64,000 nt of DNA from Kudoa neothunni (taxonomy: Eukaryota; Animalia; Cnidaria): NCBI GenBank assembly GCA_964304625.1, contig OZ199839.1, forward strand, positions 10,263,287-10,327,286, given 5' to 3'. The notes below the pieces were generated by a model. That model was not told the origin of the DNA and did no database searches. It was given only the letters and a program-made list of their open reading frames with translations. The stretch's first letter is position 1. Every line of letters starts with the position of its first letter. This document shows, piece after piece, positions 6,345 through 48,539 of this stretch. The translations under genes were made by a program, and so were the position numbers.

Positions 6345-6381
<37 letters not shown>

Positions 6382-15912: not shown

Positions 15913-16030
15913 CATTAATGATAGATAATTGTAAATTATGGGAATGTTTTGATATATTTCTAAAATTCTATCGGCCATAAATAACGGTATATAAGACCTC
16001 TTCTATTCGCAGAGATATACCGTCTAAATA

Positions 16031-17413: not shown

Positions 17414-17415
17414 TA

Positions 17416-20359
17416 AGAAAGCGACTTACGCACAAGACATCCGTTATCCCTGTCGGTTCGATGTGGGTCGTTTGTGATCCCACTAGAGCTATTTTTGTTT
17501 AATTCCTAGAGTTTTGATGTGACCATTTAATGAATTTGAAAATTTTTCGATAAAACTATGAGTTTTAATAGAATTTATATTAGTTTAAGCCTTTAAAGAT
17601 TAATTATACAACATTTTTTAAGACGAAAGATCATTTGCGGTAACGGTGTATTGGTGTACTTACATGCTACCAAAATTCGTTTTGATGCTTTGTATATTTT
17701 TAATCGTATTTCTCACGATTTTTTTTATTATTTTTAAAAAATTTAACCATAAATAAATTAACAAATTTTCATTCCTAACGTTTAGCAATTCTTTATACGT
17801 AATCATATGTTTGATCGCGTTTCCTTCCTGTGATCGCCGGATTATAGGTAGATAAATTCTTGTTATATGTTGATCGATAGCTTTTTTTAAAATTAATCTT
17901 TCATTACTAATTAATTAAAGATATAGTTATATTTTAGTAGAATTTATACATAAATCTGACGAGCAAAAATGTATTAAAAAATGTTGAACCTTTTGCGGAT
18001 TATCTACCTGAACGAAATAGTGGTGATGGTCCATATTAGAACTGACGATGAGTTCATATGCTTATAGACATTGGTACTCTTTTGTTTATTTTATTAATAT
18101 CAAAAAATCATATGCGGAATTCCAACTAGATGTATCAATTGCAGGGGTTACCATACAATGTATACATCAAATAGGAGGTATACCAAACTTCGAAAAAGGC
18201 GCCTGATGAATTAAGCATCTCATAAATAATGAGGAGAATTTTACAATCTATGTGTGTACGAAATAATAGGCATATGAGATTACATATTATTTTAATAATG
18301 ACAGGTAGATGCAAAACAAAATTTTATCTCACAAAGGACACGTTTTATTTGTAATAAATAGTGGGTAAAAATAGAAAGTTAGTGTATACAACATAAAGTG
18401 TGTTTTCCACAGGTCTGGAGACTTAACGAAGATTTCAGTGTACCCACTGATGATGTTGTGTTTGGGATTTTGTAACAAAATTAGATGATATTATATTTAT
18501 CTGAATTATTGCTCTCGGTGTTTATTTATTTTATTATAAACAATCGTGAAAGAATCGGCGATAAAACTATGCGCGGAAGGGTGTTTTTGAGGTGCCACAT
18601 CCTACCCCTATTACCTCTGGTATTTTCTACTATTAACGCGGATCATTCCACCTGATCATGGGAAAAAAAATATCTAATTCATTATGGACAATTAAAAGTG
18701 TGTAACCATGAAATATACATGGAACAAATAGGAAGTAACAATTTAAATCCCTAATAATATATAAACTTAAATAACCCAACTGGAGGGTTAATCCGAAGGT
18801 TTCTGAAAATATATAATTAAATTTTTCGGGAATTGAACAACCCTGCCCAATATTTAAAATTGTTAAAAAATTATCGTGAAAGAATCGGCAAAAATAAATG
18901 AAGTTTAGAGGTTAAAATCAAATAGCCGTCTCCTTTACCATTACCTTTATTAGAATAACAAATTTAAAACACAGTTTGCTGGACAGCGTGTCCACCTCCA
19001 GGCATGCGCGGAACTTTATTTTAAATCAACGATTTATATATCTTTGACTTTAAAACATTAGCTAGAATTTAATAACCAAAATGAAAATTCCATTGAAATA
19101 AAATACAAGAAATATACATATTAAAAGATTACATAAAGGATATTATATATTAAAAAACCACCATATTGGACACTCTGTCCATGCCCATGCATCGGAGGGT
19201 TAATTTATTATTTTAGCTGAAAAATAAACAGTCCCTCAATAGACGTATTGGAGTTCATAAATGTATTCCTTATTATATTGAATCTGAAAAGTAATGAAAA
19301 TTAAATCACTTTTCTTTTCCTCAAATAATTACAAATTTATCAAACTTTTTATTATGATCTGTACGTCTGTGCTAATATTGCGAGGTATTTTTCTATTGTG
19401 TGGCTTCTCCCTTGTCCCATTTGAATGCCGCAATAACTAGGTTAGGCCTATAACAATTTAGGTGTTTTTCTTATAAATTCATACAGATTTTAAATTTTAA
19501 ACTACCGAAGTTTAAAGGTTTTCTAAACAAACATCTTAATAGTTTTAAATCGATGAATTATTTTAATTTAAAATCAATTCAAAAGTCATTCATAGGAATC
19601 AGAGCATATTCCATTTATGCATTTAATGGTAAAACTATAACCAACATGTCCAAATAAAAAATATAGCTTGTTGAGTTTTTGCATAAGTTTCGTTCGTTAG
19701 ACTAAAATTTTGATTTTAATAGATTAATTTAACTCTAATTTTCGTTAACAGTATAATTTTCGACCATGTGACTTTATAATAATTTTTATTTCTGCGCTAA
19801 ATTATTGATAACGGATCTCTTTTATATCAATGTGAAATATATGAATACTTGTTTAATTCTTTGAACCAGTGTTCCCAATCTTTTTTCTATCGCACCCACT
19901 TTTTTCAAAAGTATTAATTTTGTAACTTAAACTGTTTATAACTTATAATATAACTTTCTATAACATTAAAATTTAAAAGAAATTGATATATATTTCTTGT
20001 CTTATTCAAATTAAAATTTTCACCACATGATCTAACTTAATTTATCGGTGGACCTTCAAAATTAACATATTTAGTTCTTCGATGCATCAAAAATAGCATC
20101 AAGCAAAACTCGGGGTATTTCAACCTTCATTAGGAACGATTTTCGTCTATAAGTGACTTATAAACTGAATATAAATAATCAATATTGAAAATTAATCAAT
20201 ATTACATTAGGTTAAATCAAAAAAGGAGATATATGATTCTAAATGAGGCAAGATTGAGATCAAATCATTTTAATTCTATTCGGGTGAAGGACACGTTAAA
20301 TTTTATTATTAATTTTCGTAATAATTAGTCATTATTTTTTGTTAGTTTTTATAATATTA
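17416..20359. repeat. Segmental duplication, paralogous to ~45425-48358
   Basis: Spacer upstream of copy 1 aligns with the spacer upstream of copy 4; almost identical near the gene, more diverged distally. Confidence 0.95.
19867..20359. mobile_element. Truncated copy of the hAT-type MITE at 47882-48539
   Basis: Starts CAGTGTTCCCAA after CTTTGAAC and aligns with 47882-48358 until interrupted by a Helitron end. Confidence 0.7.
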
Positions 20360-20850: not shown

Positions 20851-23347
20851 GATAGTGACTATTTGCACTACATATGCGTATGCGCGAGGATTAATGGATT
20901 TTTTTTCTTCCGTTTTTCATGCCTTAGACGCCATATCACTTAAAAAATAAAAACTAATATTGAAACTAACCATTTTTTGAGAAATGAATAAACTGAAAAA
21001 AAATGTTTTTTTCATTTTTTATATTTGACATAGTTTCTTATACATTTTTGGTCTTCCTTTGACTCTGGTTGAAGAAATATTGAATTCAAATCTTTCGGAT
21101 GAGTTTTCTTTTATTTTGTTAATTAAATATACTGTTTTTTCTTCATTCTGTTTGAGAATGTTCTCCAAATCAGTGTAAAATGATTTATATTGGTTCCCTC
21201 CAAGTGAGTTTAATTGATTTAATATTTTTTCACATAACTGCTTGTTATCGTCGAATTTGGATTTTGAATTATTTTCAGACAATTCGTGCAGGAAAATATT
21301 TGGGAAGTCAACTTTTGTGGGGCTTGTTACGGGAGATAATTCGTCGTGATTTAATGGAATTCCATAATTTGAATGTTTAGGTTCACATTCGTCACGTCGT
21401 TGGTCAGTGTCCTTGTAAAACCACCTTCCAGTACAAAGGGACTCTCCAGTTAAAAGATTAGATTTTAACATGGAAAATAAATGATTGCATGGAAGTGATA
21501 GCTGTTGATAAAATACACAATCACACTTGTATGTATTGTCATTAAGATGCGTAACCATGGCCGAATTACCCAAAGTATGTACAAAATATATGTTACGTAG
21601 TTTCCAAATAGTCAAACATTGGGAGATTCATTATTTCGTGTTTTATTTTATTGGAGGCAAACGTTGATAATTTGTTGATAACTTGTAAAGCATCTCCATC
21701 GATATTCTGGATTTTTGTTTTCATCACAGTCAATTCCCTTTTTATCAAACTATCACTACAGACGGTCTTACAATAATTTAGTATGTCATTTAATTGATTA
21801 ACGAGCGATGACTTTGATAAAAATCGTTTTAATTTTCCATGCTCTTGTTCCACCCTATTGTTGGTATTAGAGCCGAATGTTAAAACATCTAGTCGAAGAA
21901 AATGAGTCCACATAGGCTTTATGTTTAACCAATTTTTTAACAGATATGTGAAATATGGTGGATGAGTTTCAGTGATTTCATTGATTATACGGTCGAACAA
22001 CTCACTACTCAACGCGTATATAAGTTTTTTGGACAATTCTTTTAACTTTTCTTTTTTACTTTTAAGTATTGACATGGCATCTAACGTGGCTATTTTTCTC
22101 TCCATTGCTTTATAAACATGGAAGGAACATAACAATATTCTTGTATGTGGAAAGCACTCTTTTAAGGCATTAAACTCGGTTGCATCCTTATCGATAAATG
22201 CAACACGAGTTCCACTTATATTTTCCATCATTTTTACAAAAGCGGAAAATATGGAACAAGTCCTTCCATTAATGTCGACAACCGCAAAATTATAAAGCGG
22301 ATAATGCCAGTCATTGACTTTATATGTTGAGTCAATGTGTATAACTTAACTTTAGGGTATTTTTGATAAATTTTTTTCAATGTTTTTGTGGTAAAACATA
22401 TGTAATTTAGCTGATCATCGTCATCTTTACAAACATCTAACAGGATATCATCCCCATGTATATTATATAATTCATCAAAATCGTTTGAAAGTTTTGGTGA
22501 TTTAGTGGATTTATAATTTAAATTTCTAATTTTTTTGAGACTGATTGGAATGTTTAGATCGGTTTCAAGTGATAACTTTTTTATTATCACATCCCCAATT
22601 AAGATACTTCTCAAGATCCTCTTGAATGGACGTTGGTAGTTTTTGGTTATGTTTATAACATAGAATATTGAATCGTTCATGGTTGTGCATTATATTGTAC
22701 TTTGACACGTACAAATAGGTATCAGTACTCGAGATAATTATAAAAGCTTCGCAGCCATTAGCTAGCTGTGAGCTTGATCTAATTATATTTTCTCGTAGTT
22801 TTCTTTTATTTCCATGGAAGCATATATATTTTATGTAACGATATTGCAACTCGTTTCAATCAGTTGACTAATTCTTGATGCTCCATCCGACACGATAAGT
22901 ATAACCAGACTTCTATTTCTATAAGGTGTTTAAAATTGTTCTCTTTACTTATAAACCTTAATGAAATATTCAAGACATTGTTTCATTTCTGAATAAGAAT
23001 AAAAACGACATTGGAATAACTCGTGTTCCTCCATGCTTATTCCGCACGATAAGTTAACGCAGCTCGTCTTTTCGGTTGAGCAAGTTGTCAGAAAATTTCT
23101 CTTATATTATCTGTTCATATTGTTATTGTATTTTTAACTTCTAAAAAAAGCTTTAATGCTACAAATGAGAAACTAATATGTTATGAACTCAATAAATATA
23201 ATTGATGTCTGAAAACGAACATAAAAATAAATTGTATCGCATTAATATGTTTTCTTTAAGTAATATGGCGCCTAAGGCATGAAAAACGGAAGAAAAAAAT
23301 CCATTAATCCTTGCGCATACACATTTGTAGTGCAAATAGTCACTATC
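20851..23347 (-). mobile_element. Mutator-like (MULE) transposon, frameshifted transposase
   Basis: ~90-bp imperfect TIRs (GATAGTGACTATTTGCACTAC...) and 9-bp TSD GCTGTTTAA. ORF pieces give an N-terminal Cys/His domain (YICFHG..GCEAFI..HNHE), DDE core (IDKD..ILLCSFHV, TNNRVEQEH), SWIM finger (CDCVFYQQLSLPCNHL) and KGRPK. Confidence 0.95.
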
Positions 23348-23370
23348 GCTGTTTAATTAGTTCCATGGAT

Positions 23371-26300
23371 GGCACACGTGAACTATTGCGACACAAACAT
23401 AATCCAGATTAATTACAGGCCGCTTTTAATACCCTATTTTATTCCTGTAAATAAAGTGTATGCACAGTATGAAACTAGTGATAATCATTATATCATTATT
23501 GGTATAATTATTGTCGGTAATTAAAAGTATGCAGCACCTATAAAACACCCTCGTGCATGTGTTTTTACGAATTTCTTTTTTGCACGATTGTTCGTATTAA
23601 AAAAAGGGCACTAGCGACGAATTGTGGACCCGGATTAAGGAGATTACGCAGCTTTTAATCGCTCTAAAATGAGTTCCGATTTCGTTTCATCGATAACTTC
23701 TTCAGAAGAGGCCAGTTTTAAATTTTTGCAGGATAAAAACATTTGAGGAAAACACCTCCGTTATGTGAGGATTGTGGGAAATAAGAGAATTTGATAAAAT
23801 ATCGAAGTTCCAAAATTTAAGTGTCCCACACAAAAATATTAAGATGTTTTTGAAGAAAGGCACGTTTCAATAATTTCTTAAGGTCTGCTATTTCTGGGGC
23901 ATAGTAGAACCATTTTTTGGAGCAAATGATGAGTTTTCATTAGATAAAGTCAATTCCTATTGGCTCTTTGCCGGGCCAATAGACATTGCCTTTCTCTTTT
24001 ACTCAAATTTAGGATTAAGGGATTATGCATGGATTACGCAAGGTCTACAATTCGCCACCAGTGCCAAAAAAAGAAAGTGTAGAGTTTGGATTCAGCTCAA
24101 AATAAAAACTTGTAAATTTTATGAATTTTTCATCCGAACGCCATGGGAAACACGTTTAATCTCCATCTTTTTTCAACAAACATTGGATTATTTTGTTTCT
24201 TCCTTAGTTATTAACTTAAAAGTTATTTATTATTACTATTTAGATTTTTTACTATACATATAAATTTTATAACGACTAACTTTAAAAATATACTTTTTGA
24301 AAATTTCACAAAAACACCTCATTTTTCACTATAGCCAAAATACTTTATAATTTTTTAAATGTAGATAATAATGAAGTATAACTTGTTTTAGTTTATAATT
24401 TTTTTAGTAAATTTTTTAATAGAAACTAAGAAATTATTTAATTATTATTATTATTAAAATTCCCAAACCTAATTGTTAAAAATGGTAATATTAGTTACCC
24501 TTGCTTTGAAATATATGTGAAATATTATAAACTATATTGTTATTATTTTATAAGTCTTCATGTATATCAAAATTCCTAACGAGAAATTTGACAAAATATA
24601 TATTAACTAACAATGTTTTGGGATATAATCAAAATATGTTAACTTATGTCTTTATTTTTATTGACACATATTTAATTCATTAAAACTAATAATTTTATAC
24701 AAATAACAATCTTTTTTGGTTTTTAGATTTTATTATAACAATATTTTTACATTTATCGAATGCTTATAATAAGCACAAGTAAGAATTCCTCTTCAAAAAT
24801 AATAACTTCATATAATCTACCTTAAGTTATTTCCCTATTAAAAATAAATGTTTATCTAAAATAGAATGTTTATTAATTATTAAAAAAATTCATCAAATCC
24901 AAGAGAATTAACAAAATGCATTTGAGAACACGTGGTTAAGTCTTCTCGCTTTGAAACTATTCACACTTGAAACCCATATAAACATGTATGAAGAAATTTG
25001 ATATTGTATCATTTGAGTTTATATGGTGAAAAATGTGAAATATAACTATTTAATAAATGAATGTGGAAACAAATTAGAGATTCATTTAACGTTTACTGAG
25101 AATGAGTAAAGAATAACAAATGAATTATGGGTATCGAGTTTGGATTCAATACAAAATTTAGAAGTTATTTTTCCACTAAATTTTTTCTTCTCGTATTCTT
25201 TTATTTTATTATAAATCATCATAAATAAAGGGGCGCGGAAGAAATATTGGCAAGAGAATGTTTTTAGGTGCCGCATACTTTATCATTACCCCGATGTTCT
25301 TTATTTCTATCTTCTCTATAAAAAATAAAACAATTTAGGGATTTCAATCAATTTTGTTATATTTAAACTGAGAAATAGCATATCATTCGTACGAATTAGG
25401 TTTAAATGTCAGATATTTTTAGAATATAAATATGATTGATAAATTCGAATTATACATTTATTATTACTGGCAATTGCTTTTAAATATGCTTGTTTGTATA
25501 TTACCACTTGATATATATTTACATAAATTTAAATTCCATTATTTATTTACAAATCCAAAAGTTTAGATGATAATATTACCGATATTTCCTAGGTCGTTAT
25601 CATTTGCAACAATAATTTTTTAATTAAGTAGACGTCTACCCCTTTTTTGTGGATGATTTAATTAAAAATTAACTCAGAAAAAAATGCGACATAAATGTGG
25701 TTTAGATCGAAAATTATATCATTATTACAAAGCTACATCAAAATAAAAACACACTTGAACAATATAATACATCAATAATAGCTAAAAACAAGAGACCGAT
25801 ATAAAATAACTAATAATAAAGAAAAGGTATAAGATAAAAGTTTATGGATAAAAGATAGCTATAAATGCGTGAATGCAATAGATATTAAAAAGTGAACCAC
25901 TCGGACAAATGCTTTAACATATTGTTAAACCGATTTAGAGGAGTTTTTCCATGTAGCTCTACCCAAAGAAATTCGTCTAAATATGAATCCAGAACGGAGG
26001 AATGAACCCCTAGCATTCTCTTAAACTTCATTTTGCAATTCCTCCAGTTGCACTCTACATGGTTAGTATGCACCCCTGTAATTGGGTCTTTAAAATTTTT
26101 TTTATGATTCACCTTTTTGTGAATGTATGGGGGAGTTACATTAATATTTAATATATCATTGTTACCACCTCAACAATCCAAACGAATTTCTGTACCCGGC
26201 TTTATATATTGTTTTATATAGAAAGACAGGGTTGCAGCCGTTCTATCGGGGACAAAAGTTAAAAATCCCATTTTGGTGTAAGGATCGTCACCACCCATCT

Positions 26301-26851
26301 TTGTTCCACGATGTGGCCCACATTCTTTTTCCTTGTTGCAATCAGTGATTCATCAACTTGGACCACATGATCAACCCCTCCTATTTGATAAGGATTTTTC
26401 AGGAGATGATTGGAGCATATGTTCCGAAAATATTGGAACCACTGAATTGCGATGTGGTTGGATGTACCAGGCATGATACTTGCAGTTGTTACTGCTATAT
26501 CAAAGCAATGGCAGTGCAAAAGTTAAATAAATTTTGGTTCCGATATGTTTGCATCTTCTAACAATGATGCAAACCTGTACGATTTTTTAAGTTTATGCGT
26601 GCTGCATCTATAAATGAAGGAGTCTCTGTTTTTTATAACTTTCATTGTTTTAGAGCAGATATCACATTTTGGAGGAACCTGATTTAATATTCCTCTCGAT
26701 TGGAGACATTGTATTTCTGTTTGTTTGGTACTTGATATACGCCAAAGATCATCGAATTCCATACTGACAGTTACAGGAATAAAATAGGGTATTAAAAGCG
26801 GTCTGTAATTAATCCGGATTATGCTTGTGTCCGCAATAGTTCACATGTGCC
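23371..26851 (-). mobile_element. Merlin (IS1595/ISXO2-like) transposon, decayed transposase
   Basis: ~80-bp imperfect TIRs starting GGCACA (23371-23450 and 26771-26851). Transposase fragments 25885-26762: PPKCDIC, VVQVDESL, NHKKNFKDPITGVHTNHVECNW, YLDEFLW. No TSD found. Confidence 0.88.
23607..24065 (+). mobile_element. Non-autonomous Merlin-type element nested in the larger Merlin
   Basis: TIR GGCACT(A/G)G..GCGAATTGT.GACC, 8-bp TSD AAAAAAAG, internal relic PPLCEDCGK resembling the Merlin N-terminus. Confidence 0.75.
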
Positions 26852-27249: not shown

Positions 27250-28925
27250 AATTTTAAAAAATAAACTTTAGAAGAATGCATTATAATTCAATTAACGGAT
27301 AAGGCGAAATCTAATAGTGCCATAAAATTGAATGAAATGAATTTAGAAAAATACTATATGACTATGGAATATCGTCTACAATAATTCTTTAGTTATAATA
27401 TAAAATATAGAGATATAACTAATAATAATAATAATAAAGATATGTATTTAAAAAGAAAACAAGAACGATATTTTATTTAGCGCACCACTATAAAGACCCT
27501 ATGATTTACTTAAAGAAAAATGGGTTTATTTAAACTTATATAATATTGTGTACTAAATTATTTTTTAATAAAAAATGAACTATCTGATTCTTCCACCTAT
27601 TGCAACTTTCTTTCGATAGATAACCATATAATAGAACAATCCTCCAGCTACGCATAGTAGTACTCCAATAACACTCCCCCTAACAAAATCGTCATTTATT
27701 TTATATTCGGAAATATTACGATATAATTCCAGCAGTCTTTAAGCTATATTTAATATTAGCATCATATTCAAAAAATTAAAATGTTACTGGTTTGAATTCA
27801 CTGGAGCAATAATATCAGGGGCTAAAATATATAATTATCGAGATTTCCTTTTGAATATTTTTCACAACATACTATAAAATTAATATTATCACACATTCTA
27901 ATATAAATATTATTGATAATTTTCATTAGATACATATTATAGAAATATTAATTTGAATCGTTTTAATCAGGATCAAACGGCTTACCCTTTTGTGGTTCTC
28001 CGAGTAACTTTAGTTGTAGGTGAAGCTAATGTTGTAAATTAAATGAATATATTTTACATTTGTATTTACTAAAAATATTTAACGACATTCTTTTAAAAAT
28101 TTTAATACCCTGTAGTTACTTCCTCCTTAGCAACCACTATAAGAGTAAAATGATTAATTCTTGTTTTTAAGCGAAATACTTGGTCTGATCGTATAAATCG
28201 TTTCTCCGTGTGTATATTTCGCAGGTTTCACAATTAACTTATATGACTTGTCAGGGGAATAACCCGTGTATGTCATTGCGTTGCATTTTACTTGACAACT
28301 TGTGCCAGATTCTATGCAGGGAGTTCCAACTTTGGTTGGATTGGTAACATCCGTGATATCAAATAGCGTGTTATAGCATACTATTTCAGACATCTCTCTT
28401 GCCGGATCCATGGCTGCAGCAAAAGTTACACTACCTCCATTTATTGTGTGTGTTATAGTTAATGTTGCGCCATCTACATTAAGTAACGATTGCAAAACTA
28501 AATATTAATACCTGTTATCAATTCACCAATTTCCTTGTCATTCTTAGAACTGTCAAATTTTATTAAAATTGAATATGTTGTCCCACGTTCCAATCTTTCT
28601 AGCTCAATTGATTCAGAACACATTACTCTGCACGGAAATCTTCCATTACAATAGGCATCAGTGTAGAATTTTGCCCATTCGCTCTTTATTTTGACTATGC
28701 ATGCGATTTTATCAACGTTTGTAGTCATAGGTTGGAATTGCATTCTCGTATCCAAAACTATTACTTTTTCTTTGAGAAGACTGATGTCCTCCCCAGCTAG
28801 AGAATGTTTAAAAATATTTATTATAATAATTATTACTCGTTTTTATATAAAATTCGGACGTGGTTGTCCCAGTTGTATCTTTATTTGCGACGACACTTAC
28901 TACATAAGTAGTCCCCGCCGTTAAG
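27250..28925. repeat. Near-identical block shared by copy 2 and copy 3 (~31515-33180)
   Basis: 3' flank, micro-exon region and introns nearly identical; ORFs 28154-28495 and 32410-32751 give identical peptides. Confidence 0.93.
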
Positions 28926-30209
28926 GTGGAAAAACTCTCGTTATCGCAATTATTGTCACAGTTTCCTCTAGAACATTGGAGCTCAGTTTTCGTTGATACA
29001 TCGGGATCGAGAGCATTTCTCGCATAAACATTACAACTCGTTGCAGTTGTTGTACCATCGGAAGATTTCATATTTGAGAGGTTTAATGTAAATCCTGCTT
29101 GGATCATGCTTGGTAGTTCGATGGCACTATTTGCAACTATAGGTATGTTAGACAGAATTAAATTTATTTTTAATACTCGTATATGTTTTTATTTGGGATG
29201 TTGTATTGGGAATTTCACGAATGGAAACTGACACCTGTTTGTAAGTCGTCACGTCAACTTTCATCACGACCTCCGTGCAGAGGCTTATGCATAACGTTGG
29301 GTTTGATCCACAGGTACTTACATATGTTGGATCGTCTGCAGATGCATTTCTTATCTTAAATTCACAAATTCTGTCAGGTTTTTGGTTCAGAATGGTAATT
29401 TTAGTCTTTGGCTGTACTGTTTCTATGGTAACCTTGAAAAAAATTTCTGAAAATTCCGATGCTTTCATTGTGTATTTATTCTGGATATAGTATACAAAAT
29501 CCGGGAAAAAATCGCCACATTTTAGAGTATATTCATGTCGATATGTCAAAAGACTTGCTTTAAGATTAGCTTGATCTACTGATGTACAAATTTCTGCGCT
29601 ATTAGCGGACTTGGTAATTTCAATGCCGTCAGAAGTAATTTTACATTCTGTTATAGGGCAAATCCTATTGTATGTAAATTTAACGTCACTATTTTCAGTT
29701 GAGACAGTTATATCTGGGTTTAGTATATAACCTAAAAAATATAAAAATTTAATAAGCTCTGTGATTAAATGATTAGATTACTTTTCGGTATCAAAAAGAC
29801 TTTTGTAAGTGTTGGAGTATTTTCAGCTTTATCCACCGAATCGGCAACTTTCACTAAAACAAACATCGCTGAAAATGGAGCTTCTTCTAGATCTAAATCT
29901 TGCGTACCGCAAGGAACAACACATTTATTTCCTTTCCCAGTTCCATTACAGTTAAAATCTTTGTATGACAATTTACTTTCTACAACGTCAGATAACAGTA
30001 TATGACAGTTGTCTGTACTCGTAAATCCTTTGAGTGATATTTTAAGTTTATTTCGCTTAGTGACTTCTTTCTTGATTCCAAATTCTAGATAATGTGTTTT
30101 TTGTACAACGTCAACACTTAACGCGCCTAAGAAAATTATATAAAGTTAAATAAAGGCAGCTACCTATTAATAATAGTGGGAAGGCGTATATTTTAAAGAA
30201 TAAAATCAT
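27580..30209 (-). CDS. Tandem surface-protein gene, copy 2
   Basis: ATG 30209 (MILFFKIYAFPLLLIG). Same exon/intron layout and TM exon as copy 1; ORFs 29765-29971, 29148-29549, 28808-29107, 28498-28755, 28154-28495 are its exons. Confidence 0.85.
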
Positions 30210-30483
30210 TAGAAATTATAATAAAGGATTATACCTTGTATTTAGACATTCGCGACTACGATCTATTCAATGAACAATACAGTTTCCGAACATTCTCTTA
30301 TTGCTGAAATGTATTCAAACTTAGACATTAATAATAATTAATCGAAGATAAATGAAAACTTTTGCCATATTTATATAAAAGCTATATTTATAACCGTATA
30401 TAAGACGCCATTATTTTTCTGAAATCTTGCATCCAAGTTAGAAAACGACTTTGAACAAGTCATTAGTTCAAGAAGTGTAAGTA

Positions 30484-31480
30484 CAGTCCGACCTGGATCC
30501 GTGTATTGCGCGGTTTTGATTTTGTGCAATTTTTACTTATCCAGAGATTTTTTAAGTTATTCAATGAGTTTAAAAACCTTTTTTATATACATTCAAAGGG
30601 AAAAAATTCAAAAATTTTCTTGCAAACCCATAATGTCTAGGTATTGCAAGGTGTCTTCGTATTTTATTTCGTCGTTTTTTCAGGTAGTTGTTTTGGGAAT
30701 TGCCTCATTATTGCGTGGTTTTGAAATGGCGATAATGAGAGGAGTTTAACTGATACGTTCGCAATAATAGAATTTTCCGAACGTCTAGATAGAATATATG
30801 ATGAGATCAGTTCGTCATAAAGTTTAAAAATAACGGTGCATTATTTTAAAGTTATTATAGTATTCAACATCAATATATTATATATAGTTGGAGAAATTTT
30901 TGTCTAATGTGAAATAATCGAGAATTGTGACTTTTAGCCAATAAAAAACATGAGTGTTGGAAAATTTAAAAATGTAGACGCAGGAATTTACGACTGGGTC
31001 GTTTAAGCACAAAATAATTGAAAAAGTGCTTCTGCCTATGTAGTAACAGAAACAGCTATTCAGATAACAAACGAGATCACTATACAAAAATTAATGCAAG
31101 CAAACGATGGCTCTCAGAATATAAACAAATATATGGTCTTGTTTACAAGAGGCTTCATGGGAAACAGCCTCTGAAAATGATAAATGCATCCAAAGAAGGA
31201 TACACAAGAGTTCTGGGGCAATAAATAGCTATCAACCAACGTATATATTAAACTTTTATGAGCAAACTCGACAGAGTACGTTTGTTATGAAATCTGAAAC
31301 TGATGTAAGGAACAAAAAGATTTCAAACAAAGGTAACTGTTTTGGTTATTTTATCATTATTGAAAGAAAAATTCCCATACAATAAGATCAAGCAGGATAT
31401 TCTGATTTACACAATTTTTATGAACAAATTGTCAACGTGAGCAAGAAAAGTTTTATCAGACAGTTATAACTGTCGACCGT
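30484..31480 (+). mobile_element. Decayed pogo/Tigger-like element
   Basis: TA|CAGTCCGACC left end. ORF 31018-31224 contains INASKRWLSEYKQIYGLVYKRLHG, like a CENP-B/Tc5 HTH. Right end uncertain. Confidence 0.5.
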
Positions 31481-31835
31481 ATTTTTTGATTAAAATCAAT
31501 TTTAGTCGTCGAATTTTAAAAAATAAACTTTAGAAGAATGCATTATAATTCAATTAACGGATAAGGCGAAATCTAATAGTGCCATAAAATTGAATGAAAT
31601 GAATTTAGAAAAATACTATATGACTATGGAATATCGCCTACAATAATTCTTTAGCTATAATATAAAATATAGAGATATAACTAATAATAATAAAGATATG
31701 TATTTAAAAAGAAAACAAGAACGATATTTTATTTAGCGCACCACTATAAAGACCCTATGATTTACTTAAAGAAAAATGGGTTTATTTAAACTTATATAAT
31801 ATTGTGTACTAAATTATTTTTTAATAAAAAATGAA

Positions 31836-34465
31836 CTATCTGATTCTTCCACCTATTGCAACTTTCTTTCGATAGATAACCATATAATAGAACAATCCTC
31901 CAGCTACGCATAGTAGTACTCCAATAACACTCCCCCTAACAAAATCGTCATTTATTTTATATTCGGAAATATTACGATATAATTCCAGCAGTCTTTAAGC
32001 TATATTTAATATTAGCATCATATTCAAAAAATTAAAATGTTACTGGTTTGAATTTACTGGAGCAATAATATCAGGGGCTAAAATATATAATTATCGAGAT
32101 TTCCTTTTGAATATTCTTCACAACATACTACAAAATTAATATTATCACACATTCTAATATAAATATTATTGATAATTTTCATTAGATACATATTATAGAA
32201 ATATTAATTTGAATCGTTTTAATCAGGATCAAACGGCTTACCCTTTTGTGGTTCTCCGAGTAACTTTAGTTGTAGGTGAAGCTAATGTTGTAAATTAAAT
32301 GAATATATTTTACGTTTGTATTTACTAAAAATATTTAACGACATTCTTTTAAAAATTTTAATACCCTGTAGTTACTTCCTCCTTAGCAACCACTATAAGA
32401 GTAAAATGATTAATTCTTGTTTTTAAGCGAAATACTTGGTCTGATCGTATAAATCGTTTCTCCGTGTGTATATTTTGCAGGTTTCACAATTAACTTATAT
32501 GACTTGTCAGGGGAATAACCCGTGTATGTCATTGCATTGCATTTTACTTGACAACTTGTGCCAGATTCTATGCAGGGAGTTCCAACTTTGGTTGGATTGG
32601 TAACATCCGTGATATCAAATAGCGTGTTATAGCATACTATTTCAGACATCTCTCTTGCCGGATCCATGGCTGCAGCAAAAGTTACACTACCTCCATTTAT
32701 TGTGTGTGTTATAGTTAATGTTGCGCCATCTACATTAAGTAACGATTGCAAAACTAAATATTAATACCTGTTATCAATTCACCAATTTCCTTATCATTCT
32801 TAGAACTGTCAAATTTTATTAAAATTGAATATGTTGTCCCACGTTCCAATCTTTCTAGCTCAATTGATTCAGAACACATTACTCTGCACGGAAATCTTCC
32901 ATTACAATAGGCATCAGTGTAGAATTTTGCCCATTCGCTCTTTATTTTGACTATGCATGCGATATTATTCTCACTTGTAGTTATTGGTTGAAATCGAATT
33001 CTTGTATCCAAAACTATTACTTTTTCTTTGAGAAGACTGATGTCCTCCCCAGCTAGAGAATGTTTAAAAATATTTATTATAATAATTATTACTCGTTTTT
33101 ATATAAAATTCGGACGTGGTTGTCCCAGTTGTATCTTTATTTGCGACGACACTTACTACATAAGTAGTCCCCGCAGTTAACGAGGAAATACTCTTGCTTT
33201 GGCAAGTGTTATCACCGTTATCAACAGAACAGTTAGCATCAGTTCTTGTTGTTACATCGGGATCGAAAGCATTTCTCACGTATACGATACAGCTGGTTGC
33301 AGTTGTTGTACCATCAGAGATTTTCATACTTGAAAGGTCTAGTGTAAATCCTGTTTGTGCCATGTCCGATAGTTTAATAGCATTATTCGCAACTAAAGAT
33401 ATATTAGGCTGAATTTAATTAATTTTTAATACTCGTATACGTTTTTATTTGGGGTGTTGTATTGGGAATTTCACGAATGGAAACTGACACCTGTTTGTAA
33501 GTCGACGCATCAACTTTCATTACAACCTCTGTGCATATGCTTATGCACGAATTCGTGGCTGTTCCACAGGTGGTTACATATGTTTCATCAGTTACAGATG
33601 CCTCTTTTATCTTGAATTCACAAATTCTATCAGGCTTTGGGTTCAGAATAGTAATTTTTGTTTTTCGTTGTCCCGTTTCTGTGGTAACGTTGAAAAAAAT
33701 ATTTGAAAATTCGGACGCCCCTTTTGTGTATTTATTCTGGATATAGTATACAAAATCCGGGAAAAAATCGCCACATTTTAGAGTATACTCATGCCGATAT
33801 GTCAGGAGACTTGCTTTTAAATCAGCTGGGCCGCCTGTTGCACAATGATCAGTGCCAGCCGTAAACTTAGTAATTTCAGTGCCATCAGAAGTGATTTTAC
33901 ATTCAGTTATAGGGCAAATCAGATTGTAAGTAAATTTAACGTCGCTATTTTCAGTTGAGACAGTTATATCTGGGCTTAATATGTAGCCTACAATATATAA
34001 ACATTTAAAAAGCTCTGTGATTTAACGTCTAGATTACTTTTTGGTATCAAAAAGACTTTTGTAAGGGTTGGAGTATTTTGAACCGCTTCCTTCGTTCCGG
34101 CAACCTTCACTAAAACAAATACTGTTGAAAATGAGACGTCTTCTAATTCTAAATCTTGCTTATTGCAAGGAACAACACATTTATTTTGTATTTCAGTTTC
34201 AGTACAACCGAAATCTTTGTATGACAATTTGCTTGCTTCGACTTTAGATAACTGTATATAGCATCTGTTTGTGCTGGTAAATTCTTTGAGCGATATTTTA
34301 AGTTTATTTCTCTTATTGCTTATTCCCTTGATCCCAAATTCTATGTAATTTGTTTTTCTCGCAACTTCGGCATTTAACGCGCCTAGAAAATTTATATAAA
34401 CTTAAATAAAAGCAACTACCTATTAATAAAAACAGGAAAACGTTTTTTTCAATGAGTAAAGTCAT
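31836..34465 (-). CDS. Tandem surface-protein gene, copy 3
   Basis: ATG 34465 (MTLLIEKNVFLFLLIG). Exon 3 is open by manual translation although absent from the ORF track. Same splice sites and TM exon as the other copies. Confidence 0.85.
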
Positions 34466-34662
34466 AAAAAATTATATCAACGGATTAAATATTGTATTTA
34501 GGCATTCGCGAATACGATCTATTCAATGAACGATACAGTTTCCGAATATTCTTTTATGGCTAAAACGTATTCAAACTTTCACATTAGTGATAAGTAGTTG
34601 CATATTATGGATGCGTTTTAAAATATTTATATAATAGTGACCGTATATAAAGGTAAATAATA

Positions 34663-37600
34663 GGCAGTGGCTATTGACACGCTAATGAATTTCACTGAAT
34701 TCTTAAATTATTTGGATCTCCATTGTTCATTATTTTTTTAATCATAATTTTTCCTAAATTGTTTTTAAATTTCCTGTTAAATACTCGTTGTTGAATTTTC
34801 TACGCGTAAATGTTGACATTATCAAGGAATATTGGACCGTAAAAGCCTGTATAAAGTTAGATAATGTTAATTATATAAGGTATAATGGCTTGAAGATGAA
34901 ATTTACTTCAAATTTTCAAGGTTGGTTATTATCATAATGAAAAGATGGGCGGTGTTTAAGCATTAAGATCTCATGGCTTAAAATCACGGTTATCTGCCAA
35001 ATTAATTAGTAATACAAATATATAACCCAATATTTAATTTCGTTTATATATCAAATAATTTATTCTGTTTAATGTTTATTAAGTCGTATCTAACAACTCA
35101 TGACATTTTATAAGGTTAGTTTTTTAAAATATAATTCATTAACTATCAAGTCTAATGTAAATAATTTGTTCAAAGATAACATGTATTATGGTTTTTGTTA
35201 TGAATTTATGTAAATTACTTAGCTGAAAAGAAATATTTAAGTTTTACAACAGATAACTCCTGCGCAAACTGGCGCGATGGAGGATAACATAGGAACTGAT
35301 ATTTTTGAAGTGGGTAAAAAGTTTACGTCATTTGAGAATCTTGAAGATTCCATACAATTATACTAACAGAAGACTTACAGCAACCTAATGACGTGAGATT
35401 CCAACAAAATTAGCAATAGCAAATGAATTCTCACTAAAACATTCAATGAGGATTTAATCTGGTATTCAATAAAATATGTATGCTATTTTAGCAATCAATA
35501 TCGATACCGATCAAAAGGCATAAGACAATGTCAGACTTAAAAGGAAACTGTCCGGTTCATGTATCCTTGAGTGTTAATCCCGATGGACAAAAACTTGAAG
35601 TGAAATCCTTGAATTTGGATCATAACCACGAAAAAAATGAATTTTTTTTTCAGTTATTTACCACCACAGCGTAAATTGGATAATAATAAAGATTTAATAT
35701 TAGAGTTAGTTTCTTTGGGAGAAAACAAAAAATTGCTGCATTCTAAATTCAACAAGAGACGGGAAAAAATTACATTGAAATGAATACACAATTCCAAAAT
35801 AAATATGTCGAATAAAATAAATAATATCAACTATATTTATCAATTGCTCACGTTGATTATAATTGTGATGTGAGAATATTGGCTCGCGAAAACAATCAAG
35901 TTAATGCAATATTATTCCTGGATGAAGAAATGAAGGTTTTTTCTTTTCTCCCAGAGCTACTTTTAGTTGATGCAACCTACAAACTAATAGATTCACGGTA
36001 ATTTTTAAAAATTTTATCTTGTTTTATTTGACCTATTTTTATTAATTTTTATCTCCTTAAATTGTAGTGCTCCTTTGTATCTAACGGTTTCAGAAGGTTC
36101 TATGGGTTTATCTCATGTAAGTAGTGCCTGTATTATGTATGAGGAAACTGAAGCCGTTACCAACTGGTGGTATATCGATGAATTAATATCAATTACACCG
36201 TGGATACAACAAACAGTACTGCCCATTGTTACTGATAAGGATTTTAAAACTTCGTAAAGCTCTAAAAAATCATTTTCCTAATTCTGCATTAATCCTCTGT
36301 AAATTTCATGTAATACGGATGTTCCATCGTGAGTTGCGACTTGCTAAATAGAATATAAAAAATGAAGTCAAAGATAATATTTTAGATATTATTAGAAAAA
36401 TGATGTTTTCGAAAAACGAAGAACAATACAAAATCTTACTTGCTGAACTATACAATCACAAATATGAAGGTTTTAACGTTTACCTCAGACAAAATTGGGA
36501 CCCAATTTATTCACAATGGATAATTTCTTCGAGTGATTCAAGGCATTATTACGACAACATAACAAACAATAGATTGGAATGTCTCAACTCCAAATTAAAG
36601 ATCACCATTTTAATTTCTCGAAGAACTGAGAAGACATGTCATATTGTGGCAGAACTGTCAAAATAGACACGTTTAAGTATTGAGACTGAGGTAGAAAGGA
36701 ATTACTGCGACTTTTTGGCATCGTTTTTTTTAAATTAATAACAAAAGAAATTATACAAATGGGGAATAAATTTAATGTGGGAATAGAGTAAGACTCCACT
36801 TCAAATTCTTGTACGTGCTCCTTCTATCGTTCTTACCAATTGCTTTGCCAACACATATTCGCTCAAGATGTAAATTATTGATGCCTATGTTCGACCCCCA
36901 ATTGTGTCATTTTAGATGAAGAAAAGATCATATTTCAAATTTTATTAAAAAATACTAAAATAAATTCAGTAAAAAACAATTTAACAGGGTCTGTAGTAAA
37001 AAAGAAGACTTCGGAAAACCTCTCAACTTTTTCCAAGCGAATGAAAACCGCTAATGTGTATACAGACAAATTAGCAACGATTGCTGCTGAGTATTGTGGT
37101 GAATATTTCAACTGCTGTGTGGAATATTTTCGAATCTCAGAAAGCATAATTAAAAGCCATAACCTAGCCGGTTTAAAGAAATTAATAAGTATACATTATT
37201 ATCTGCTAACATACTGATTATTTTTAGAGTTGGCAAAGATTCTTGATTCATCCACAGAATGCAATGTAGATACGGATATAGTGGAGTCACCAGCCCCTTG
37301 TAAGAGTGATAACTCTTTATAATTATTTATAGATATTAATTATACTAAATTAGATGAGAATGCAAACGCCATAAAGGGCTTGTCTGAAAGCAACCAGCCC
37401 GAAACATGTGTAGTCTCCATATCATCAATTAAACTAAAGGAAACTCCCGAATCATCGCAGCCCCAAAATGACTCAACTGGTGAAAAGTCTACAGAATGTT
37501 TGGGAATAAAAGGTTTGCATCGTCTTTTATTGTAATAATTGTTATTTAGATCTTATATTGCCAGAAAAAGTAAAAGCAGTTGGAAGACCCAGAGGATACG

Positions 37601-42573: not shown

Positions 42574-45191
42574 CTATCTGACTCTTCCACCTGTCGCAAC
42601 CTTCTTTCGATAGATAACCATATAATAGAACATTCCTCCAGCTACGCATAGTAGTACTCCAATAACACTTCCTCTAACAAAATCGTCATTTATTTTATGT
42701 TGAGAAATGTTACGATATGATTCCAGCAGTCTTTAAGCTATATTTAATATTAGAATCATATTCGAAAAATTTATATTTTACTGGTTTGAATCCACTGGAG
42801 CAATAATGTCAGGGGCTAAAAAATATAATTGTCAAATTTCCGTCTTTTATATTTTTTAAATCCTACTATAAAATATATATTATTATCAAATATCCTAATA
42901 TAGCTATTTTTAATAATTTTCATTGGATAAATATTGGAAAAACATGATTTTAATTAGTTTAATCTGAATTAAATGGCTTACCCTTTTGTGGTTCTCCGAA
43001 TAACTTTAGTTGTAGGTGAAACTATTATTGTTAATTAAATAAATATATTTGCACTCGTTTTTACTAAAAAATATTCAATAGCATAAATTAAAAAATTGCG
43101 TACCCTGTAGTTTCTTCCATCTTAGCTGTCACTATAAGAGCAAGAGAATTAATTTTTATTTTTTTAAACAAAATACTCGGTCTGATTATATAAACCGTTT
43201 TTCCATGTATATATTTCTCTGGTTTCACAATTAATTTATATGATTTTGCAGAAGAAAATCCTGAATATATCATTGCGTTGCATTTTACTTGACAACTGCC
43301 ACCAGTTTCTATGCAAGGAGTTCCAACTTTTGTTGGATTGGTAACATCCGTAATATCAAGTAATGTATTATAACATATCATCTCAGTCATATCTCTTGTT
43401 GGATCCATGGTTGCGGAAAAAGTTACACTTTCACCACTTATTTTGTGAGTTATAGTTAGTGTTGCGCCATCTAAATTAAGTATCGATCGCAGAACTAAAC
43501 ATTAATACCTGTTAACAATTCACCAATTTCCTTATCATTCTTAGAATTATCAAATTTTATCAAAATTGAATAATCTGTCCCTCGTTCCAATCTTTCTAGC
43601 TCAATTGATTCAGAGCACATTACTCTGCAAGGAAATCTTCCATTACAATAGGCATCAGTATAGAATTTCGTCCATTCGTTCTTTATTTTGACTATGCAAG
43701 CGATTTTATCAACGTTTGTAGCCATAGGTTGGAATTGCATTCTCGTATCCAAAACTCTTATATCGTCTTTCGAAAGCGTGATGTCAACCCCAGCTATTGA
43801 CAGATTTAACGTAGATATATAGAAAATTTATTACTTGTTTTTATATAAAATTCGGACGTTGTTTCTATATTATTGTCTGTTTTCGCGACGACAGTTACGA
43901 CATAAGTAGTCCCCGCAGTTAAGGTGGAAATACTCTTGCTTCCGCAAGTGCTATCATCGTTAGCATCAGTTATGATTGTTACATCGGGATTAAGGGCCTT
44001 CCTCACGTTTACGGTACAACTGGTTGCAGTTGTTGTACCATCAGAGGTTTTCATGCTTGAAACGTTTAATGTAAATCCTGTTTGTCCCATGCTTGATGGT
44101 TCTATGGCATTATTTGCAACTAAAGATAATTACACAAAATTTAATTGATTTCGTATACTCGTATATTTTTTTATTTGAAATGTTGCGTTAGGGATTTCTC
44201 GAATGTGAACTGACATCTGTTTATAAGTCACTTCAACTTTCATCACAACCTCAGTGCATAGACTTATGCACAAATCTGAATTTTCTCCACAGGAAGTTGT
44301 ATATGTTTCGTCTTCCACAGAAGCATCTTTTATCTTGAACTCACAAATTCTATCAGGTTTTGGGTTCAAAATAGTAATTTTAGTGTTTTTTTGTTCTGGT
44401 CCTTTGGTTACTTTGAAAATAATATCTGAAAATTCTGATGCTTTCATTGTGTATTTATTTTGGATATGGTATACAAAATCCGGTAAAAAATCGCCACATT
44501 TTAGAGTATATTCATGTCGATATGTCAAAAGACTTGCTTTAAGATGATCTTGATCTACTGATGTACAAATTTCTGCGCTATCAGCGGACTTGGTAATTTC
44601 AATGCCGTCAGAAGTAATTTTACATTCTGTTATAGGGCAAATCCTATTGTATGTAAATTTAACGTCATTAACGTCTTTTGATACAGTAATATCTGGGCTT
44701 AATATATAGCCTAAAATATATAACAATTTAATAAATTCTGCAATTTGAAGACTAGATTACTTTTTGGTATCAAAAAGACTTTTGTAAGGGTTGGAGTATT
44801 TTCAACCGTTTCTTTCGTTCCGGCAACCTTTACTAAAACAAATAATGTTGAAAATGAGACTTCTTCTAATTCTAAATTTTGCGCATTGCAATTTACAACA
44901 CATTTATTATCTTGTTGGGTCCCAGCAGTGCAACCGAAGTCTTTGTATGACAATTTGTTGTCTTCCACTTTAGATAACTGTATATAACATATATCTGTAC
45001 TGGTAAATTCTTTGAGTGATATTTTAAGTTTATTTCTCTTATTTACTTCTTCCTTGATCCCAAATTCTAGATAATTGGTTTTTTGTGTATCCTGAGCACT
45101 TAATGTGCCTAAAAAATGTATACCAAGTTAAATAAAATCAGCTACCTATTAATAATAGCGGAAAAACGTATATTTCAACGAATAAAGCCAT
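42574..45191 (-). CDS. Tandem surface-protein gene, copy 4
   Basis: ATG 45191 (MALFVEIYVFPLLLIG). Same architecture; tail RKKVATGGRVR; short deletion in the exon-4 Cys loop. Confidence 0.85.
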
Positions 45192-47881
45192 AAAAATTTA
45201 TATCAGCGAATGAAATCTAGTGTTTAGGCATTAGCGAATACGATCTATTCAATGAACAATACAGCTTCCGAATATTCTTTTAAAGCTGAAAGGTATTCAA
45301 ACTTTGATATTAATGATAGATAATTGTAGATTAAGGAAAAGTTTTGAAATATTTCTATAATAATCTCGACCATGAACAACGGTATATGAGACCTCTTCTA
45401 TTCGCAGAGATATACCGTCTAAATAAGAAAGCGACTTACGCACAAGACATCCGTTATCCCTGTCGGTTCGATGTGGGGTCGTTTGTGATCCCACTAGAGC
45501 TATTTTTGTTTAATTCCTAGAGTTTTGATGTGACCATTTAATGAATTTGAAAATTTTTCGATAAAACTATGAGTTTTAATAGAATTTATATTAGTTTAAG
45601 CCTTTAAAGATTAATTATACAACATTTTTTAAGACGAAAGATCATTTGCGGTAACGGTGTATTGGTGTACTTACATGCTACCAAAATTCGTTTTGATGCT
45701 TTGTATATTTTTAATCGTATTTCTCACGATTTTTTTTATTATTTTTAAAAAATTTAACCATAAATAAATTAACAAATTTTCATTCCTAACGTTTAGCAAT
45801 TCTTTATACGTAATCATATGTTTGATCGCGTTTCCTTCCTGTGATCGCCGGATTATAGGTAGATAAATTCTTGTTATATGTTGATCGATAGCTTTTTTTA
45901 AAATTAATCTTTCATTACTAATTAATTAAAGATATAGTTATATTTTAGTAGAATTTATACATAAATCTGACGAGCAAAAATGTATTAAAAAATGTTGAAC
46001 CTTTTGCGGATTATCTACCTGAACGAAATAGTGGTGATGGTCCATATTAGAACTGACGATGAGTTCATATGCTTATAGACATTGGTACTCTTTTGTTTAT
46101 TTTATTAATATCAAAAAATCATATGCGGAATTCCAACTAGATGTATCAATTGCAGGGGTTACCATACAATGTATACATCAAATAGGAGGTATACCAAACT
46201 TCGAAAAAGGTGCCTGGTGAATTAAGCATCTCATAAATAATGCGGAAAATTTTACAAGCTATGTGTATACGAAGTGATAGGCATATGAGATTACATATTA
46301 TTTTAATAGTGACAGGTAGATGCAAAACAAAATTTTATCTCACAAAGGACACGTTTTATTTGTAATAAATAGTGGGTAAAATAGAAAGTTAGTGTATACA
46401 ACATAAAGTGTGTTTTCACAGGTCTGGAGACTTAACGAAGATTTCAGTGTACCCACTGATGATGTTGTGTTTGGGATTTTGTAACAAAATTAGATGATAT
46501 TATATTTATCTGAATTATTGCTCTCGGTGTTTATTTATTTTATTATAAACAATCGTGAAAGAATCGGCGATAAAACTATGCGCGGAAGGGTGTTTTTGAG
46601 GTGCCACATCCTACCCTATTACCTCTGGTATTTTCTACTATTAACGCGGATCATTCCACCTGATCATGGGAAAAAAAATATCTAATTCATTATGGACAAT
46701 TAAAAGTGTGTAACCATGAAATATACATGGAACAAATAGGAAGTAACAATTTAAATCCTAATAATATATAAACTTAAATAACCCAACTGGAGGGTTAATC
46801 CGAAGGTTTCTGAAAATATATAATTAAATTTTTTGGGAATTGAACAACCCTGCCCAATATTTAATATTGTTAAAAAATTATCGTGAAAGAATCGGCAAAA
46901 ATAAATGAAGTTTAGAGGTTAAAATCAAATAGCCGTCTCCTTTACCATTACCTTTATTAGAATAACAAATTTAAAACACAGTTTGCTGGACAGCGTGTCC
47001 ACCTCCAGGCATGCGCGGAACTTTATTTTAAATCAACGATTTATATATCTTTGACTTTAAAACATTAGCTAGAATTTAATAACCAAAATGAAAATTCCAT
47101 TGAAATAAAATACAAGAAATATACATATTAAAAGATTACATAAAGGATATTATATATTAAAAAAACCACCATATTGGACACTCTGTCCATGCCCATGCAT
47201 CGGAGGGTTAATTTATTATTTTAGCTGAAAAAATAAAAACCATAAACAGTCCCTCAATAGACGTATTGGAGTTCATAAATGTATTCCTTATTATATTGAA
47301 TCTGAAAAGTAATGAAAATTAAATCACTTTTCTTTTCCTCAAATAATTACAAATTTATCAAACTTTTTATTATGATCTGTACGTCTGTGCTAATATTGCG
47401 AGGTATTTTTCTATTGTGTGGCTTCTCCCTTGTGTCCCATTGACTGACGCTATAACTAGGTTAGCCTATAACAATTTAGGTGTTTTCTTATAAATTCATA
47501 CAGATTTAAAATTTTAAACTACCGAATTTTAAAGGTTTTCTAAACAAACATCTTAATAGTTTAAATCGATGAATTATTTAATTTAAAATCAATTCAAAAG
47601 TCATTCATAGGAATCAGAGCATATTCCATTTATGTACTTAATGGTAAAACTATAACCATCATTCCCAAATCAAACATTATAGCTTGTTGAGTTTTTGCAT
47701 GAGTTTCGTCGTTAGACTAAAATTTTGATTTGAATAGATTAATTTAACTCTAATTTTCGTTAACATTATAATTTTTTAGCCATGTGACTTTATAATAATT
47801 TTTATTTCTGCGCTAAATTATTGATAATGGATCCCTTTATGTCAAAATGAGATATATGAATACTTGCTTAATTCTTTAAAC

Positions 47882-48539
47882 CAGTATTTCGAACCTTTTT
47901 TCTATCACTCCCACTTTTTCCTGAAAAAAAGTTCCGTGCCCACCTTTTTCAAAAGTATTAATTTAGTAACTTAAACTGTTCATAACTTTGAATAAAACTT
48001 TTTATCACATTGAAATTTAAAAGCAATTTATATATATTTCTTTTCGAATTAAAATTAAAATTTTCCCCACATGGCCTACTTAATTTTTCGGTGGACCTTC
48101 AAAAATAGCATCAAGTAAAACTCGGAGTATTTCAATCTTCATTAGAAAAGATTTTCGTCTATAAGTGACTTATAAACCAAAAATAAATAGTAAATATTGA
48201 AAATTAATCAAGATTATATTAGGTTAAATCAAAAAGGAGATATATGGTTCTAAATGAGACAAGATTGCAATCAAACCATTTTAATCCTTATCGAGTGAAG
48301 GACACGTTAAATTTTATTATTTATTTCCGTATAATTAGTCATTGTTTTTATAATATTAATTGTCGTTTATAAATAAGTGACATTGAGTTCAAAGTACGCC
48401 ATTCTGCCCAATAATCTCATTATTAACCGTGTTACACCAATACTCAGGATTTTCCGTTTCCCACCAGAACGGTTCATTAAACTTTCGAATATTTCCAAGT
48501 CTCATTAAAATATTGTCGCGCCCATGTTGGGAAATACTG
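47882..48539. mobile_element. hAT-type MITE
   Basis: TIR CAGTATTTC..AAC; 8-bp TSD CTTTAAAC. The homologous flank near 12.3 kb lacks it. Confidence 0.85.

Follow-up and report, generated by a model that had tools for sequence, protein, structure and literature searches.

The 64,000-nucleotide (nt) stretch of the Kudoa neothunni genome considered here (contig OZ199839.1, positions 10,263,287 to 10,327,286; hereinafter, the window) carries five tandem copies of a 2.6-kb gene that is predicted to encode a surface-type protein, and exon 4 of the third copy is a mosaic of tracts shared with copies 5, 1 and 2. The best explanation of this mosaic, taken as a whole, is very probably ordinary, proximity-dependent gene conversion between tandem paralogs, and the products would be type I membrane proteins with recombined modules of the FN3-like kind. 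As seen from self-comparison of the window, the copies lie on the same (reverse) strand, at 13169-15795 (copy 1), 27580-30209 (copy 2), 31836-34465 (copy 3), 42574-45191 (copy 4) and 49366-52000 (copy 5), and are 83-90% identical overall at the nucleotide level. The large exons are intact in copies 1, 2, 4 and 5, with an in-frame 15-nt deletion in the exon-4 loop of copy 4. Copy 3 is predicted, like the others, to have a signal-peptide exon, five large phase-1 exons encoding six modules, several micro-exons for the stalk, and an exon for the transmembrane segment, with a tail of 12 residues.

The mosaic exon of copy 3 occupies positions 33093-33392, begins and ends in phase 1, and holds 99 whole codons for one module of the predicted FN3 fold; the earlier note on this DNA had recognized the three-way chimera and placed it, slightly too narrowly, at 33095-33390. 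Tract A (33268-33439), shared with copy 5 (50803-50974), comprises the end of exon 3, intron 3 and module residues 1-41 (strands A-C); it contains a single difference in 172 nt (33439-33268), and 138 nt of it are exact (33405-33268). Tract B (33175-33266), shared with copy 1 (14508-14599), encodes residues 42-72, including the variable, cysteine-bounded loop, and also contains one difference, in 92 nt (33266-33175). Tract C (31512-33174), shared with copy 2 (27250-28918), extends from residues 73-99 to the stop codon and into ~320 nt of the 3' flank; its first 172 nt are exact (33174-33004), and the identity is then ~98% down to 31512, with 27 differing columns out of 1669, 12 of which fall within one 40-nt island (32964-33003). 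Across tracts A, B and C, the remaining copies are merely 72-83% identical to copy 3. Both junctions lie inside the exon, in blocks of donor identity of 12 and 7 nt. Special recombination sites at these junctions are ruled out, such overlaps being unremarkable at identity levels of this order. In the putative donors, both junctions are spanned by separate short tracts (42 nt identical in copies 1 and 2; 31 nt nearly identical in copies 2 and 4), which favours copy 3 as the probable recipient, as far as can be judged from one genome.

Formal tests support exchange. A GENECONV-like permutation on the five copies gave global p values of 1e-4, 0.013 and 1e-4 for tracts A, B and C, respectively, and the pairwise homoplasy index (PHI) test gave p=2e-4; tract B loses its significance in the permutation test once the sixth copy (see below) is added. 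In approximately unbiased (AU) tests of all 105 trees, copy 3 groups with copy 5 in segment A, with copy 1 in segment B and with copy 2 in segment C, and each of these three is rejected as the sister of copy 3 outside its own segment (p from 3e-5 to 0.017); copy 4 as the sister of copy 3 in the middle segment is not rejected. Hence no single duplication tree fits the gene, as had been claimed before, and the incongruence of the trees along it supports segmental exchange between paralogs. The weight of individual identical runs can be gauged from a null simulation without conversion, with rate variation, in which the longest exact run has a median of 72 nt and a 99th percentile of 133 nt. Accordingly, exact runs under ~70 nt in conserved parts carry, by themselves, no evidential weight.

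Similar switches are seen elsewhere in the cluster. In particular, an exact 303-nt tract, from exon 2 to the start of exon 3, is common to copy 1 (15213-15515) and copy 4 (44606-44908), and exon 2 of these two copies is nearly identical save for a loop that copy 1 (15502-15561) shares with copy 3 (34172-34231; 63 columns exact). Exon 6 of copy 5 (49956-50223) follows copy 4 for 187 nt at 97% (50037-50223) and then switches to an 81-nt stretch (49956-50036) that exactly matches copies 1 and 2, and copies 2 and 4 share an exon-3 tract of 231 nt at 97% (29458-29688 and 44437-44667, respectively) along with a second one of 55 nt at 98%. The sharing between copies 1 and 4 takes in ~2 kb of upstream DNA in addition to exons 1-2: the block upstream of copy 1 (17413-20339) has its counterpart at 45423-48349, with ~100% identity in the proximal 2 kb and 86-93% farther out. 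The earlier note had identified the exon-level switches correctly but underestimated the tracts as tens to hundreds of base pairs, the maxima being 1.7 kb (copies 2 and 3) and the ~2 kb of upstream DNA (copies 1 and 4). A Tc1/mariner-like element with inverted ends (16030-17413; DDE_3 open reading frame, ORF, at 16592-17239) precedes the start codon of copy 1 by ~230 nt; copy 4 has an empty site there, yet its adjoining 2 kb are ~100% identical to copy 1, so the insertion is probably younger than the shared tract. The spacer between copies 2 and 1 contains MULE remnants with inverted ends (20851-23450 and 26771-26851; MULE domain match in the ORF 21593-22231), and a long, Sin3a-like ORF of 1852 amino acids lies at 4593-10151, with best database matches at 26-30% identity.

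The history of the cluster can be envisaged as follows. The five genes would be old tandem paralogs, with a synonymous difference of ~0.3, that keep swapping DNA by non-allelic homologous recombination repair, mostly through gene conversion of the non-crossover type. The tracts would measure from ~40 nt to 2 kb, with the younger ones overwriting and trimming the older, so that exon 4 of copy 3 would represent a copy-1-derived middle left between copy-5 and copy-2 tracts. The exchange would depend on proximity, end in ordinary short identity blocks, be blind to exon borders and be filtered by purifying selection; given the junctions inside exons and the tracts running through introns, the transmembrane exon and the flanks, nothing points to site-specific or exon-wise exchange. 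Serial unequal crossovers, with the birth and death of chimeric genes, could produce mosaics as well, and it is in line with this possibility that copies 2 and 3 share the whole 3' half of the gene with its flank, and copies 1 and 4 the 5' part with 2-2.9 kb of spacer. However, many tracts are internal and short, with a return to the earlier partner; the spacers between copies 3 and 2 and between copies 4 and 3 are unduplicated, the former being single-copy, which argues against simple unequal crossover for those tracts; and crossovers alone would need many steps. With internal tracts and unduplicated spacers favouring conversion over crossover, it appears unlikely that unequal crossovers built the mosaics, and probable that they contributed to the two long tracts.

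The dependence on proximity can be assessed with a sixth copy, which lies 7.7 Mb away and is equally diverged (80-82%): only 5% of it is painted by the window copies, versus 49-75% for the in-cluster copies. In six other paralog groups (five clusters and one mixed), on all three chromosomes, the number of significant shared fragments per group is 1-11. Most of these link neighbours, and some, in groups with only three sequences, may reflect recent duplication rather than conversion. Two family members, L009 and L012 (C2:2.63-2.65 Mb), do not differ in the first 1900 aligned columns, after which L009 switches to L013; this is either a second clear long-tract mosaic or a recent duplication.

The family is indeed very large. 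The genome, of 40.26 Mb, consists of three large contigs (17.15, 12.04 and 11.05 Mb) and a further ~18 kb, and the 12.04-Mb contig ends in a (TAAACC)n array; the published description of the assembly, made from yellowfin tuna, reports 40.2 Mb, an N50 of 12.0 Mb, three chromosomes, 5,316 predicted proteins, the same telomere motif at one end and a k-mer coverage of about seven, and uses none of the words fibronectin, surface and antigenic (PMC12239612). With exon 3 as the query, the genome returned 147 matches among 150 scored, and 448 candidates, or 529 with a profile, on all three chromosomes; thus, the family comprises at least 147 loci and perhaps ~450-530 candidates. In a sample of 49 loci fetched outside the window, homologs of exons 3, 4 and 5 are present in all 49 and of exon 2 in 48. 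When 1.84 billion proteins were searched with a profile, 22 matches emerged outside Kudoa neothunni's assembly, and none of the 20 that were looked up is a named homolog. The same exon order in AT-rich DNA was found in 2 of the 6 external contigs read, and the carriers are probably other myxozoans. AT-rich contigs with family members (L060, L061, L063, L064 and L065) come from runs SRR33849685, SRR31175926 and ERZ795007; in L061, the family member adjoins a SNF5 gene that is 41% identical to SNF5 of the Kudoa neothunni genome, which suggests a more distant relative. Within the limits of the library searched, no literature describing the family was found.

Database searches and fold predictions for the spliced protein were made one exon at a time. 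As predicted from sequence, each copy starts with a signal-peptide exon, continues with five large phase-1 exons, between which lie introns of 37-50 nt, and ends with several micro-exons for the stalk, a transmembrane exon and a basic 12-residue tail, so that the encoded chain would comprise a signal peptide, six cysteine-containing beta-sandwich modules, a stalk, one transmembrane helix and a short tail; a location at the cell surface would follow from this architecture. The model of the exon-4 module is a beta-sandwich (predicted local distance difference test, pLDDT, 82.8), and its best structural matches are all FN3 domains (for FN3con, Foldseek prob 1.0, E 5e-4, TM 0.67). Although the Pfam fn3 match of this exon stays below the cut-off, the model has an FN3 fold. 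Tracts A, B and C map to residues 1-41, 42-72 and 73-99 of the module, respectively, and the middle one holds the variable cysteine-bounded loop, which is modelled with low confidence. One family-conserved cysteine of this loop (position 59; 33175-33266) is missing from copies 1 and 3, leaving an odd number, and copy 4 (43835-44119) lacks both module-4 loop cysteines owing to its 15-nt deletion. Exon 3 encodes two modules, the first of which is Ig/FN3-like (Z up to 7, not decisive), and a word-based homolog search with this exon gave no matches. Exon 2 shows a weak FN3-type match along with weak profile similarity to exon 4; none of 49 exon-2 sequences has a V-set or I-set match in Pfam or the PDB, although the Alr domains discussed below often go undetected by Pfam. 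No ESM Atlas feature match reached 0.9, either for exon 2 or for exon 3. No match to VSP, of the Giardia or Sphaerospora molnari type, was found, and the cysteines are spaced within beta-sandwich modules, unlike the frequent CXXC of those proteins. The stalk micro-exons measure 28, 11, 40 and 34 nt (32044-32392, with equivalents in all copies), and the frame from the stalk to the transmembrane exon closes only with an extra micro-exon of length 2 mod 3 in the ~165-nt gap at 32078-32241, or with alternative splicing. In copy 4 the donor of the 11-nt exon is GC, and copy 5 has no GT at that place.

Selection on these genes, as judged from the coding sequences, is purifying. The ratio of nonsynonymous to synonymous rates (dN/dS) is 0.23-0.51 in the individual ectodomain exons, 0.12 in the transmembrane segment and tail, and 0.57 (95% confidence interval 0.43-0.77) even in the family-variable third of sites, the last value by pairwise counting rather than by site models.

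A mosaic surface protein naturally invites comparison with programmed or frequent antigenic variation within an infection, whereby one expressed member is rewritten from silent donors; cassette-type rewriting of this kind is behind the VSG mosaics of trypanosomes, vlsE of Borrelia and msp2 of Anaplasma. Several features would fit such a system, namely, a very large family of divergent surface-type proteins, the swap of a variable, cysteine-bounded loop by tract B, the exactness, and hence recent age, of some tracts, and the antigenic change that is suspected in myxozoans (PMC8481699). However, all five copies are full length, with a predicted signal exon and transmembrane segment, and each appears as both donor and recipient, so the one-way transfer into a single expression site is not seen; no silent or pseudogene donor archive is seen either, since stops occur in only 4 of the 147 exon-3 matches. 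Furthermore, the locus is 1.7 Mb from the telomere, conversion also spans introns, the transmembrane exon and flanks, dN/dS is under 1, and the read-derived contigs, which drop rare variants, show no new joints, with all but one of the checked variant letters being paralog alleles. Nothing indicates ongoing or programmed switching, and this explanation of the mosaics is quite improbable.

Could the mosaics have been made by the assembler, through collapse of paralogs or haplotype switching at ~7x long-read coverage? The published assembly was, indeed, built from low-coverage reads of an infected fish (PMC12239612). Read-derived contigs covering 28750-34700 were compared with the borders of a k=31 graph predicted from the assembly. 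Four public runs of one sample contain the stretch, and no RNA run does; the library type of the four is not on record, and the sample is probably the same specimen as that of the assembly. For run X1, eight contigs were listed, and 15 of their 16 ends coincide exactly with predicted graph borders; contig ends in two runs agree with the predicted graph to the base. The depth of the two-copy tract contigs is 15.3 (33268-33439) and 16.9 (33007-33174), about twice the 6.8-10.4 of single-copy contigs. No new joints were reported within this region, no alternative letters were listed in 33175-33267, including the sites private to copy 3, and of 13 variant letters that were checked within the gene, all are paralog alleles except for one beside an alignment gap. 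With contig ends at tract borders and twofold depth, supplemented by a reported quality value of 48.5 and by the similar pattern in other clusters, an assembly chimera, the outcome that would have undone the earlier interpretation, is highly improbable, and the mosaic is present in the DNA of this specimen. Finally, the notion that no exchange occurred and that identity patches reflect strong local conservation on one tree, to which exact runs of up to ~70 nt expected under rate variation lend some colour, can be dismissed practically with certainty, because the tracts are located in the exon that varies most and cover introns as well as synonymous sites, adjacent segments are identical between different pairs of copies, and the segment trees conflict.

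Some points weigh against gene conversion as the cause of the mosaics and against a host-facing role of their products. The 1.7-kb tract of copies 2 and 3 and the ~2-kb tract of copies 1 and 4 may stem from double or old single crossovers. Among the contigs listed, none spans a junction with 31 nt to either side of it, with 197 short contigs unlisted. The exon models are predictions from sequence, expression of the genes is putative, and the direction and timing of exchange are unprovable from the genome of one specimen. Positive selection was not found, dN/dS being below 1 everywhere it was looked for, which leaves the host-facing role without direct support.

Tandem multigene families commonly undergo ectopic (interlocus) gene conversion, and the Kudoa cluster shares with them patchwork tracts of tens of bases to kilobases, dependence on proximity, incongruent trees and homogenized 3' ends. 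The mechanism is thus alike, whereas the family and the phylum are, as far as the searches reached, new to such observation. Large surface-protein families with segmental mosaics between members also include the variant antigens of protozoa, such as Trypanosoma brucei VSG, Plasmodium var and T. cruzi MASP/trans-sialidase; in contrast, no expression site, silent or pseudogene archive, single recipient, subtelomeric location, monoallelic expression or positive selection is apparent in the Kudoa cluster. Among cnidarians, Alr1/Alr2 and the Alr family of Hydractinia are clustered single-pass genes with one domain per exon and an FN3-like module with extra cysteines (PMC9546547, PMC8282982), and Alr2 shuffles with its neighbours by gene conversion or unequal crossover (PMC8282982). 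In all these respects the Kudoa genes are similar, and no homology is claimed; the Alr proteins have two to three Ig domains, one FN3-like domain and a tail that often contains immunoreceptor tyrosine-based activation or inhibition motifs (ITAM/ITIM) (PMC9546547), whereas the Kudoa genes encode six modules and a 12-residue tail without such a motif. In the myxozoan Sphaerospora molnari, expanded VSP-, RIFIN/STEVOR- and ETRAMP-like membrane proteins have been proposed to be variable antigens (10.64898/2026.02.11.705288, PMC11792419). These are, like the Kudoa family, lineage-specific expansions of membrane proteins, but they are CXXC-rich or Plasmodium-like; gene conversion figures in neither of the two papers and fibronectin is absent from the genome paper.

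What this means for the parasite can be stated with varying confidence. Antigenic change is suspected in myxozoans, and little is known of the molecular basis that it would have (PMC8481699; 10.64898/2026.02.11.705288). Judging from the architecture, the family size and the parasitic life style, the chances are evenly balanced that the family serves as a host-facing repertoire of adhesins or antigens that conversion diversifies over evolutionary time, and evasion of fish immunity through gene conversion is a possible part of such a role. It is a rather unlikely proposition that this family of several hundred FN3-like membrane proteins is the variant surface coat of Kudoa, with segmental conversion in tandem clusters supplying novel antigens at a pace that counts during an infection or from one infected fish to the next; if true, an animal parasite would possess a system of antigenic variation driven by conversion. 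Conversion as such is an ordinary process, and the interest lies in a very large, undescribed family in a parasitic animal, to which the present analysis adds the read-graph check and the proximity control. Myxozoans harm wild and farmed fish; 147 to ~500 surface-type genes reshuffled by conversion represent a concrete candidate for antigenic change, and such a reshuffled family would bear on the choice of vaccine antigens.
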